From positions 63,980-127,979 of the forward strand of contig NIVC01002976.1 in NCBI GenBank assembly GCA_002269645.1: 64,000 nt of DNA. Direction: 5' to 3'. The first letter of the stretch is position 1, and each line of letters begins with the position of its first letter. A program made the translations under genes and the position numbers. Below, in pieces: positions 18,505 to 49,968 of this stretch. The notes under the pieces were generated by a model. That model made no database searches and was not told the origin of the DNA. It saw only the letters and a list, made by a program, of their open reading frames with translations. The DNA comes from Macrostomum lignano (taxonomy: Eukaryota).

Positions 18505-21500
18505 ATGGCCTACTCATTCAAACAAAAATGGTACATTGTTTGTACATTATTAATGTACAACGTCGATATCGGTGAGTACCTGTAGTCTGTTGCATTAATA
18601 AACCTTGTAGTGAAGCCCAGGCCGGGGTTCGATTCACAAGGGCCAGCAAGCCAACACGTTTTGGACTTTGGTTTTAGAAAAAAGCCAACGATAAATATAA
18701 ATGAATACAGCTCATTCTGTCTCAGTGCGCAATGGGCAGAATTGCCTCAGTGCGCGTTGGCTGTGGGAAGATGTCGTCAAAGTTACCAACAAGCCTGCTG
18801 CCATTCCATTCCTGTTAAACTACATTTGATACATGTCTCATCCCTATTTTGTTTTAGTTAGAGACAATGGGTCCGTGTGCACCCTGGTGCACTTTAAGCG
18901 ACATTGTCGCACAACCGGCGAAAGGAATCACTACCCATTCCGCCGACTCCCCTGAGCAGGCACACAAGCGCGCGAATGCGTACGCAGTCATACGCACAGG
19001 CACACACATACACAGGAGTGTACAGCGGCCCTAACTTTATTTATGGTTAGGCATGCACACTTCGTTATGCGTTAATTGCACTAGCAGAGCCAAGCCGAGA
19101 TTCCAATTTAGCCCCAAATTAATGTGACTGCACTTGGAATCGAGCCTGGGCCGCTGGCACATCAGAGCTGGGCTACGGCCGCTCTTGTTACATCCCTTTT
19201 GCCTGGAGCATTTGGAAAGATGAATCGCGGTTTCTTCAAATACAATAATTCTCTAAGGATCCTCTTATTCCTCTCAAGGAGGCTGCTCGTTCCTTGGAAC
19301 TTAACCAACCAGTCTATACAGTTACCCTCAACCAATTCTTTCAGCCAAGGGTGCTCAATTCTGCAGGCTCACTCCTTCCAACCCCTGTTCGGAGGCCGCT
19401 TTGTCGCGCTTGAACCAGAACGATGACATCATTATTCAAGCTGATCAGCCGTGCAGAGCTACTGCAGTGAAATGCGAAATCAGAATGCTAAATAATTACA
19501 CTTTAAAATTGGGCTCGGTATGACCTGCTTTGCTTTCATTGCAAATAATTATTGCTCAACTGAAAGCACTCTAGAATTTTCCTTCTTTACAGACCCGTCA
19601 TTCGAACGAATCTCGAAGACTCTCGAAGTTCAAAGTCAGTCCGAAAATGGATGGAGCAACCTTATGGTGCGAATGGAGCTGCAGCAATGGGCAGAACAAA
19701 ACAACGATCAAGGTTCTGCGATTGACACAGGAGAAATCAATTCGTAAGCTGAAAGACCGAATTTTGATTTTTTCAGATGAATGCGTATGAATGGGTTGTA
19801 GTCCAGCGGTTAGAGCGTTGGATTACGACTTAAAGGTCGCGGGTTCGATTCCCGATCAATTTGTGTCCTTGAGCAAGACACTTAACTCTGCATTGATTCT
19901 GAATCTCACCTTTTGAGTTCCAAATCTCACCTTCTGGATTCCTAATCTTAGTCCCTTTAAGGGGTCTCAACCCCGTATTAAGGGGTTGTAGTCCAGTGGT
20001 TAGAGCGTTGGACTCACGGCTGTAAGGTCGGGAGTTCGATCCTCGATCTACTCGGAACAATTTTTGTCTTTGAGCAAGACACTTAACTCTGCAATGCTTC
20101 AGTTCACCCAGCTGTAAAATGGGTGCCAGCATTAGCTGGGGTAATTGAGGGTGTGGCGACCCCCCCCCCCCAGTCCTTGGACTGAACAGCCGTACGCAAC
20201 CTTCAGATGCACCGCGCAATAGCTGCGGCTGAGCTGTCGGTTGCACATCTGGTACATTGCGGCAGGTGTAATCATTAATTTATTATGAATGCCCTTAGCA
20301 AAACTACAAATGACAACCAAAACTTTCCCAGGTGGTCCTAATTTGCAAATTATCAGCGTGAACATCACCGAGCACTGGGTGATTGGTAGACAAGCAACTT
20401 TCGAATTCCGCACCGAGGGTTCGAGACCCCTGCCTGTGCACAAATGCTGGTTGGACAGACCTGACAGAGGAAAAGACAAGTTCCGGCCAATTTCCGTGAG
20501 CTTCTGGCTTTGTTATTTTTTTATTTAGTAACCTATGGACAGATACGCAATGTATGAAATCATTCAATTGCAAATAAATTTTAGGATGAGTCCAGTTCTG
20601 ATCGTTCATACTTTGATCTCAGTACTCGATTCGCTGTTAATGTGACAAAAGATTACAAAGGCGGCAATATCAGTTGTCAGGCTGAGCTGGATGGTAATTC
20701 GATCTACACTGAAGTAGCGAAGGAGCCTGTTCCTCGTATTCTGGGTGAGTTGCCTAAACACCTTCTAATCTGTTTTGAGGTTTTTGAGAGGCTCTAGACT
20801 CTGGCACCAAGACGCTTTAGCACCAAGGGGCGCCAGCACCAAGGGGCTTTAGCACCAAGGGGCTTTAGCACCAAGGGGCTTTAGCACCAAGGGGCTTTAG
20901 CACCAAGGGGCTTTAGCACCAAGGGGCTTTAGCACCAAGGGGCTTTAGCACCAAGGGGCTTTAGCACCAAGGGGCTTTAGCACCAAGGGGCTTTAGCACC
21001 AAGGGGCTTTAGCACCAAGGGGCTTTAGCACCAAGGGGCTTTAGCACCAAGGGGCTTTAGCACCAAGGGGCTTTAGCACCAAGGGGCTTTAGCACCAAGG
21101 GGCTTTAGCACCAAGGGGCTTTAGCACCAAGGGGCTTTAGCACCAAGGGGCTTTAGCACCAAGGGGCTTTAGCACCAAGGGGCTTTAGCACCAAGGGGCT
21201 TTAGCACCAAGGGGCTTTAGCACCAAGGGGCTTTAGCACCAAGGGGCGCCAGCACCAAGGGGCTTTAGCACCAAGGGGCTTTAGCACCAAGGGGCTTTAG
21301 CACCAAGGGGCTTTAGCACCAAGGGGCTTTAGCACCAAGGGGCTTTAGCACCAAGGGGCTTTAGCACCAAGGGGCTTTAGCACCAAGGGGCTTTAGCACC
21401 AAGGGGCTTTAGCACCAAGGGGCTTTAGCACCAAGGGGCTTTAGCACCAAGGGGCTTTAGCACCAAGGGGCTTTAGCACCAAGGGGCTTTAGCACCAAGG

Positions 21501-49500: not shown

Positions 49501-49968
49501 ACAATTCTCTCTCAAAACATCCAACGCTGCTTTGTTTGCAAAAGTACGCTCCGTAGCAGTGAGCATTTTTGGCGTCTCGATCAGAATCATTGCTTCTTTT
49601 AATAGCCAAGCTATTTTCCTCGATCTGCAGCAGCCGGAAGTTCATGTACTTGTCAGCATTGTTGTGCACAAACTTCCTCAGCAGCACAAACTGCGGCAAC
49701 TGTAATGAGATGTCAATGAGGACATTAAAACATGCACGGGAGCTCCAATATTGAAGGACTCAGCAATTGCATACCTTTGAATAGTCTCGAACTGAGCAGG
49801 TAACTTTATATGCTAATTCTGAGTTAGTTGAGTTCTCGGTGATTCCACACAGGTGAAATTCGGTCAGGCTGTGGTTGAAACCCGCTATGCAACCTGGCGG
49901 ATTCTCAGTCAGACCAGCTGGCCTCTCGTGGCTGAGCAGCACCTCGATGCCCAGGGCTCTAACTCTTT
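43515..49968 (-). CDS. Receptor C: paralog of B with two extra Ig-like modules; 5' exons not in the window
   Basis: Exon from 49968 ERVRALGIEVLLSHE, then LPQFVLLRKF and Ig-like exons. TM exon about 43825-43630; last exon 43541-43515 TVYYEADN*. The upstream intron runs into the satellite and retroelement. Confidence 0.7.
44732..45003 (-). mobile_element. tRNA-derived SINE, duplicate of 34107-34378
   Basis: Same intron position in paralog C. Confidence 0.85.
46117..46378 (-). mobile_element. tRNA-derived SINE, duplicate of 35481-35743
   Basis: Same intron position in paralog C. Confidence 0.85.

Follow-up and report, generated by a model that had tools for sequence, protein, structure and literature searches.

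What kind of receptor is encoded by a tight group of related genes in the flatworm Macrostomum lignano, and is the domain at the tip of one branch of them a working lectin? The genes lie at positions 18505-49968 of a 64,000-nucleotide stretch of contig NIVC01002976.1 (NCBI GenBank assembly GCA_002269645.1, positions 63,980 to 127,979 of the forward strand), here called the window. A preliminary description made from the sequence had taken its three genes, A, B and C, for lectin- and immunoglobulin (Ig)-like receptors of a candidate diversified recognition system. Based on a computational analysis of the locus we propose that it holds a few clustered genes for type I membrane glycoproteins belonging to a family of the Macrostomum lineage, built as Ig rods and lectin-headed in one branch, which are most likely adhesion or recognition receptors, a reading that we consider moderately probable.

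Three genes with a shared Ig architecture

Three intact multi-exon genes were rebuilt by hand, reading the strand concerned and splicing exons at GT-AG sites that preserve the frame. All three, together with a fragment termed A', lie within 31 kb:

18505..26179, forward strand: gene A, 18 exons, 900 amino acids (aa), a single open frame from the ATG at 18505; weak signal peptide, 8 Ig-like domains, transmembrane helix and a tail ending in KYKYEDA, without a lectin-like domain
32890..39683, reverse strand: gene B, 20 exons, about 1100 aa, canonical GT-AG sites, a single open frame; signal peptide, F-type-lectin-like domain (the head), 8 Ig-like domains, transmembrane helix and a tail ending in TVYYEADN
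39623..39683, reverse strand: B exon 1, which holds the start codon and the signal peptide MDFSVNLVIFFICTLCCVGY, hydrophobic in character; its donor, GTGAGT, is in phase 1
38488..39145, reverse strand: the head-encoding part of B, made of exons 2 and 3 and the first 84 nucleotides of exon 4, an F-type-lectin-like jelly roll
33008..33195, reverse strand: B exon 19, which encodes the transmembrane helix and the larger part of the cytoplasmic tail
43515..49968, reverse strand: gene C, 21 exons, 1230 aa, with an open frame that runs from its counterpart of B exon 3 to the stop context of B; the product has the C-terminal half of the lectin-like domain, followed by 10 Ig-like domains, a transmembrane helix and a B-type tail
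47107..47884, reverse strand: three C-specific exons, which form two extra Ig modules absent from B
40609..40871, forward strand: A', an orphan copy of the transmembrane and tail exons of A, with its frame intact, between B and C

The sequence features that had been reported for B are all found in exons 1-4. The hydrophobicity peak of exon 1 spans residues 1-27, and exons 2-4 encode QSSAY, H-X29-R-R-N-X4-R (HSSN...VIVH-RRN-VEKV-R) and RFVLLRKFVANAADKYMNFVMVELEE (RFVLL...MNF...VE). The spliced models likewise bear out that A, B and C share Ig-like modules, one membrane-spanning segment and a short tail: each has one C-terminal hydrophobic helix and 22-33 N-glycosylation sequons, and the Tyr-containing tails end in TVYYEADN in B and C and in KYKYEDA in A. 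As had also been described, C holds the later exons of the head only and A is headless. A homologue of B exons 1-2 that could belong to C is absent anywhere in the window (tblastn, E<50), and a permissive tblastn of the window finds no lectin-like exon upstream of A, in which the signal peptide passes directly into the first Ig-like domain.

The model of B agrees at its junctions with two gene predictions in UniProt. A0A1I8HXW3 (P0024) is 100% identical to B across exons 2-8, save for intron 6, which is retained in that prediction, and A0A1I8J6H5 is ~98% identical. A longer version of B exon 9 (acceptor 36962) was dropped, as all M. lignano predictions and gene C use the acceptor at 36914. In gene A, 16 donors are GT and two are GC (22160 and 26066), so that the gene apparently uses two GC-AG introns; A' bears a GT (40758, forward strand) at the place of the second GC donor, which supports that junction of A.

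The Ig-like modules are ~100 residues long, most of them split between two exons by a phase-0 intron and bounded by phase-1 introns, and they are related to each other, collinear and positionally homologous among the three genes. A single-sequence phmmer search of the Ig region against the PDB returned nothing useful. A profile of 17 modules matched CD276 (E=8e-6), SYG-2, the nematode nephrin (1e-5), and nectin-4 (0.006), and also CD4 domain 2 (E about 0.02-0.2), SIRP and antibody constant domains. In Pfam the match of C2-set_2 to the whole of B is marginal (23.6 bits against a cut-off of 21, with no single significant stretch), and 4 of the 17 modules match it weakly. AlphaFold2 was run for domains 2-3 on a B-group protein 97% identical to B, and the resulting model (predicted local distance difference test score, pLDDT, 75.6) matches RAGE, Roughest, SYG-1/2 and Fab light chains in Foldseek at E ~2e-7. 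As these are tandem Ig structures, the Cys-rich domain that follows the head is Ig-like as well; a PAN/Apple identity for this domain, suggested by the automatic UniProt name of a relative, was rejected on the same ground. Arrays of alternative cassette exons of the Dscam kind were also considered and rejected, as tblastn finds no additional module copies in the introns.

The modules depart from the canonical Ig core of a B-strand Cys, a C-strand Trp and an F-strand Cys. The B-strand Cys column is without Cys, and the sole invariant residues are two Cys, one placed by HMMER at the column of the C-strand Trp of SYG-2 and the other in the F strand; in modules 3-9 the B-strand Cys is missing and a Cys stands at the canonical Trp column. 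CD4 domain 2 is the textbook Ig domain with a disulfide that joins strands C and F inside one sheet, and the alignment columns suggest a C-F disulfide of this kind in the modules. CD4 domain 2 recurs among the matches of the module profile, although at the weak similarity given above.

The best matches of the modules by profile and structure are adhesion molecules of the IRM/nephrin and nectin/B7 types. These molecules (SYG-2, SYG-1, Roughest, nectin-4, CD276 and RAGE) share with A, B and C the serial C2-set (CD80-like) Ig domains, a turn of the G-G-N-P-x-P type, the one transmembrane helix and the short Tyr-bearing tail. Unlike them, A, B and C are not orthologous to these molecules, have no fibronectin domain, carry an extra lectin-like head and differ in their Cys pattern.

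The N-terminal head and its sugar-binding site

A single-sequence phmmer search of the head against the PDB also gave nothing useful, and family profiles alone worked. A profile made from 10 head domains of the family matched both domains of the striped bass lectin FBP32 (E=2.2e-7), the eel agglutinin AAA (E=0.027) and a lectin domain of Streptococcus mitis (E ~0.18). F-type lectins were the sole credible fold family, as the remaining matches at E<1 were coiled-coil noise. Aligning the head with AAA by hhalign gave E=3e-4 with a probability of only 39%. The AlphaFold2 model of the head, built on the family alignment (pLDDT 73.9; predicted template modelling score 0.76), has as its top Foldseek match in the PDB the eel agglutinin 1K12 (E=1.2e-5, TM 0.54/0.58), and the top 20 also include lectinolysin, the fucose module of S. 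pneumoniae and FBP32. Pfam returned nothing for the head, whether single exon translations, the spliced N-terminal domain or the whole of B was searched; among the 10 family heads one matched PF22633 (E=0.0022) and one PF00754 (E=0.006), both below the cut-off. The profile matches and the model support the view that the N-terminal domain of B is a remote and strongly diverged homologue of the F-type lectins. The F-type-lectin-like fold proposed in the preliminary description is thereby upheld, and in the HMMER check that it suggested, family profiles recover both F-type lectins and Ig domains, with the Pfam head matches remaining sub-threshold and C2-set_2 marginal.

Apart from the jelly-roll fold and the similarity at the level of profiles, the head shares with the F-type lectins (AAA, 1K12; FBP32, PDB 3CQO) a QSS motif near its start, a W-x-[VL]-x-L strand, counterparts of Arg79 and Arg86 of AAA followed by G-x-E-[VI], and a likely counterpart of the Cys108-Cys124 pair. 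Its binding site is another matter. The fucose motif of F-type lectins reads H-X24-R-X-D-X4-(R/K) and their calcium motif hhDGx (PMC5712786), and neither is found in the head. In the HMMER and the hhalign alignment alike, AAA Arg79 corresponds to the invariant Arg, which in B is the second R of RRN, and Arg86 to the Arg of KVR. Both are kept throughout the family, with a spacing between them one residue below that of AAA. The same two alignments pair the His of B with His47 of AAA, a non-binding residue of its FYH motif, and place at the column of the binding His52 the Pro of a conserved TPD motif. Since the alignment of the His loop is uncertain and the model is weakest there, the assignment of this His is provisional. 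It is kept in most members of the family and replaced by Leu or Gln in some paralogues. Family-wide, the first Arg is followed by N, Q, A or P and never by an acidic residue, and the AAA Cys82-Cys83 pair has no counterpart. Where FBP32 and AAA have NAIDGN, the aligned columns of the family show CFRDSSA or a sequence like it, and DG is missing from every member. Of the His/Arg/Arg triad that B had been said to keep, the two Arg therefore stand, and the His does not, at least by these alignments.

On the whole, the head is an F-type fold whose binding site is remodelled and probably non-canonical. As it has neither the aligned His nor the acidic partner, and neither the Cys-Cys lid nor the calcium site, its ligand is probably not fucose bound in the canonical way.

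The setting of the head is unusual too. Lectins of the AAA/FBP32 type are soluble, with single or tandem domains, whereas this head tops an Ig rod that is anchored in the membrane. Among F-type domains tethered to a membrane, those of Drosophila Furrowed and CG9095 come closest. There too the lectin domain belongs to a type I membrane protein that bears many small modules in series outside the cell, and in CG9095 the triad is also degenerate. Their stalks consist of complement control (CCP) repeats and a C-type lectin domain and not of Ig domains. Two reviews of F-type lectins (including PMC5712786) list as partners C-type lectin, pentraxin, CCP, FA58C, H-type lectin and transmembrane segments, and no Ig domain. 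The combination is missing from these partners, in keeping with the unusual architecture claimed from the sequence, and a literature search on lectin-Ig architectures and on the gene identifiers of the family found nothing specific.

Receptor tyrosine phosphatases of the mu type begin with a MAM domain, followed by an Ig domain and further repeats, and mediate cell-cell adhesion. By analogy, they too place an N-terminal beta-sandwich head before Ig domains on a type I membrane protein; they differ in that their head belongs to another fold family and that they have fibronectin repeats and a large catalytic cytoplasmic part.

History of the cluster and variation in the family

Self-comparison of the window by blastn revealed, apart from many satellites, a large duplicated block (25810-39000 against 40510-49971), within which the divergence between B and C is mosaic, as judged from the synonymous rate (dS) and the ratio of nonsynonymous to synonymous rates (dN/dS):

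25810..37164, no strand assigned: recent duplicated or converted block, which extends from the 3' end of A through the intergenic DNA into B (exons 20 to 8) and is 90-95% identical in nucleotides to its copy at 40510-48385
B versus C, exons 3-7: dS 0.57-2.1, dN/dS 0.28-0.42, aa identity 35-67%
B versus C, exons 8-20: dS 0.03-0.15 (about 0.07), dN/dS 0.33 pooled over exons 10-20, aa identity 89-100%

The simplest reading of this pattern in the aligned exons is that C is a chimera: unequal recombination or conversion brought the 5' part of an older paralogue together with a 3' part of B type. The three extra exons of C lie at the chimera junction, and its single-exon specific module is closer to the eighth domain of A and to UniProt A0A1I8IYP7, to part of which it is 90% identical, than to B. 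As the recent block includes the last two exons of A, it also accounts for the A' fragment. Recombination between the paralogues is thus seen within the cluster itself.

For most exons the dN/dS between B and C falls at 0.13-0.8; exons 11 and 20 give no defined value, and exon 19 alone exceeds 1, on the basis of a handful of substitutions. Values of about 0.3-0.4 denote purifying selection, with long-term constraint on both halves of C (0.28-0.44), and since its old exons were constrained, the C lineage was functional for a long time.

These figures bear on the best surviving alternative, namely that part of the cluster is decaying duplication debris, in which case C would be a chimeric pseudogene truncated at its 5' end, the fragment A' would be dead, and A and B would be the sole working genes. 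Two repeated elements lie upstream of C:

50946-54657, forward strand: DIRS/Ngaro-like retroelement of three open reading frames (ORFs), embedded in a 17-bp minisatellite just upstream of C
50036-50757 and 55251-64000: the 17-bp minisatellite, unit GTGTGCACAAACACACG, >500 copies, which flanks the retroelement and reaches the end of the window

ORF1 of the retroelement encodes a SAP domain and a CCCH-like zinc knuckle, ORF2 a reverse transcriptase with RNase H (YMDD), and ORF3 a tyrosine recombinase. The minisatellite with its inserted element would fit the loss of the 5' end of C, which in the window has no homologue of B exons 1 and 2, no in-frame ATG and no signal peptide, and A' is an isolated pair of exons. 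On the other hand, open frames and splice sites are kept in all 21 exons of C, the dN/dS of 0.28-0.42 in its old 5' exons was accumulated over a dS of 0.6-2.1 and hence tells of long constraint, and the missing exons could sit past the end of the window or be lost in the assembly of the satellite, which may hide or have displaced them. We therefore regard decay of part of the cluster as possible and yet doubtful.

Beyond the cluster, the family was sought with a profile of the C-terminal 99 positions of the head, as the N-terminal columns are dominated by gaps. An exhaustive search of 1.84 billion representatives gave 19 matches, of which the credible ones are all from M. lignano, and every relative detected among 15 billion proteins is from this species. 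At E<1e-3 no relative outside M. lignano was found, either with the C-terminal half of the head among the 1.8 billion representatives or in word-indexed searches. The latter yielded very few relatives, so that the counts of family groups are lower bounds. Within the species the head is carried by at least seven diverged groups, B and C plus five or more others. Domain content varies among the members: domain 2 is missing from one group, a tandem pair of heads occurs in one protein, and A is headless. One member is solitary, beside a poly(A)-binding protein (PABP) gene and outside any array.

The gene of one diverged full-length member, P0015 (NCBI PAA49974.1, locus L001), does not stand in an array of paralogues. 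The longer cytoplasmic tail of P0015 has VVYAQV and TEYTEI, which fit the patterns of the immunoreceptor tyrosine-based inhibition (ITIM) and switch (ITSM) motifs.

Between B and C, aa identity is 67% in exon 3 (head), 54% in exon 4 (end of the head and start of domain 2) and 35-50% in exons 5-7 (domains 2-3). The head is thus the most conserved region, as it is within the B group, where paralogues show few changes in it. Variation within that group is concentrated elsewhere:

37491..37544, reverse strand: hypervariable loop at the 3' end of B exon 6, encoding ISVFNSMSNVKELRPISE, in the third extracellular (second Ig-like) domain

Among B and the family members P0010 and P0025, 11 of the 18 columns of this loop vary, as compared to 36 of 347 elsewhere (Fisher p=8e-7), and the loop has low pLDDT in the model of domains 2-3. 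With P0008 included, most positions of the loop differ between the proteins, which elsewhere are about 90-95% identical. This pattern of variation fits a fast-evolving family of surface receptors and by itself is no demonstration of a function in immunity or allorecognition.

Possible functions, surroundings and significance

In our proposal each protein is a rod of 8-10 C2-type Ig-like domains with a single membrane anchor and a short Tyr-containing cytoplasmic tail, tipped in one branch (B, C and five or more further groups) by a strongly diverged domain of F-type lectin fold. The proteins would most likely act as cell-surface adhesion or recognition receptors, in which the head and the first Ig domains would touch a ligand on another cell or in the matrix and the tyrosines of the tail would link binding to signalling or sorting. 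On this view the cluster grew by tandem duplication, by internal duplication of domains and by unequal recombination or gene conversion.

Several points weigh against this proposal. The gene models are computational and so are the UniProt entries that agree with them. Gene A has a weak signal peptide and two GC donors, and C, lacking a start codon and a signal peptide within the window, may be non-functional. The AlphaFold2 models are only moderately confident (pLDDT 74-76), and the region around the His of B, with a pLDDT of about 50-55, is the least confident part of the head. In Foldseek the APC10/DOC, CBM32/discoidin and muskelin domains score near the F-type lectins. As DOC, CBM32 and muskelin score alike, the fold of the head is a galactose-binding-like jelly roll, and it is the sequence evidence that indicates the F-type branch.

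A second alternative, closest to the preliminary description, sees in the head a functioning lectin of the fucose type and in the cluster a diversified receptor system for immunity or allorecognition, with specificity set by variation among copies or alleles. It draws on the homology and fold of the head, on the two conserved pocket Arg and the His kept in most members, on the tandem paralogues, the chimeric C and the varying number of domains, on the hypervariable loop of the third domain, on the confinement of the family to one species in the databases, and on the roles of F-type lectins elsewhere in immunity and gamete recognition (PMC5712786). The binding site itself speaks against it, as the residue aligned to the His of B is not His52, the acidic residue, Cys82-83 and the Ca2+ motif are missing, and some paralogues have lost the His altogether. 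So do the low dN/dS, below 0.45 in nearly every exon and above 1 in exon 19 alone, the head being the least variable region, and the size of the cluster, which is just three genes and a fragment, with another member standing alone beside the PABP gene. We consider this alternative unlikely, and its immune or allorecognition part, to which the measurements made here lend no support, is unproven.

A variant of our proposal holds that the family is a fast-evolving system, specific to Macrostomum, for the recognition of partners, gametes or self, in which the conserved head would dock on a common ligand and specificity would be set by the hypervariable loop and by the number of Ig domains as varied by recombination between clustered paralogues. 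The family would then be a class of Ig receptors with lectin heads as yet undescribed from other animals; we think this quite improbable. It is very improbable that A, B and C belong to the ordinary, conserved nephrin/Kirre (IRM) or nectin adhesion molecules and have only diverged in sequence by drift, the outcome that the preliminary description had set against its own, since despite the best Ig matches to SYG-2, SYG-1, Roughest and nectins and the nephrin-like succession of a long Ig array, a transmembrane helix and a Tyr-containing tail, the relatives found by the searches above are from M. lignano only, Pfam detects no fibronectin type III (fn3) domain on B, nephrin has no lectin-like head, the Cys pattern of the modules is non-canonical and one species holds at least seven diverged groups.

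The cluster of adhesion or recognition receptors that we favour is set in DNA which, like the window overall, is rich in tandem repeats. Satellites crowd the introns and the A-B and B-C intergenic regions (20804-21766, 24401-24839, 26500-32600, 37706-38015, 39250-39538 and 41160-42020), among them a 16-bp unit in 60 copies, (TAC)146, purine-rich 14-bp arrays and units of 41 and 21 bp. The oyster bindin gene, itself an F-type lectin gene, is reported to carry a CT microsatellite and a retrotransposon linked to recombination (PMC5712786), and by analogy it may offer a parallel to this satellite-rich cluster.

Other elements of the window touch the cluster less directly. ARAGORN calls a tRNA-Arg(ACG) at 19792-19864 (forward strand), within the third intron of gene A. 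Beside it (19980-20251) and in the introns of B and C (34106-34382, 35505-35743 and 44731-45003) there are copies of a repeat that resembles a tRNA. They are probably a tRNA-derived family of short interspersed elements (SINEs), and the called tRNA may be the head of such an element and not a gene. Two further genes lie upstream on the forward strand. One, at 3269-4733, is the C-terminal portion of a gene for a Cys-loop ligand-gated channel (Pfam Neur_chan_memb), and its ORF holds between the membrane segments an in-frame 24-bp minisatellite (3413-4176) that encodes repeats of the GEVVVDQV type. A RhoGEF gene with a DH domain follows at 7270-17400, in the introns and possibly the exons of which lie several minisatellites of 24 to 41 bp.

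The cluster illustrates how a family can grow by segmental duplication, domain duplication and the formation of chimeras in a satellite-rich genome. If confirmed, an Ig rod tipped by a domain of F-type lectin fold would be a new addition to the known combinations of lectin domains, and the head would be a further F-type fold that has lost its canonical fucose and calcium sites. The family would then be a lineage-restricted group of surface receptors and, in a flatworm that is experimentally tractable, a candidate for study.

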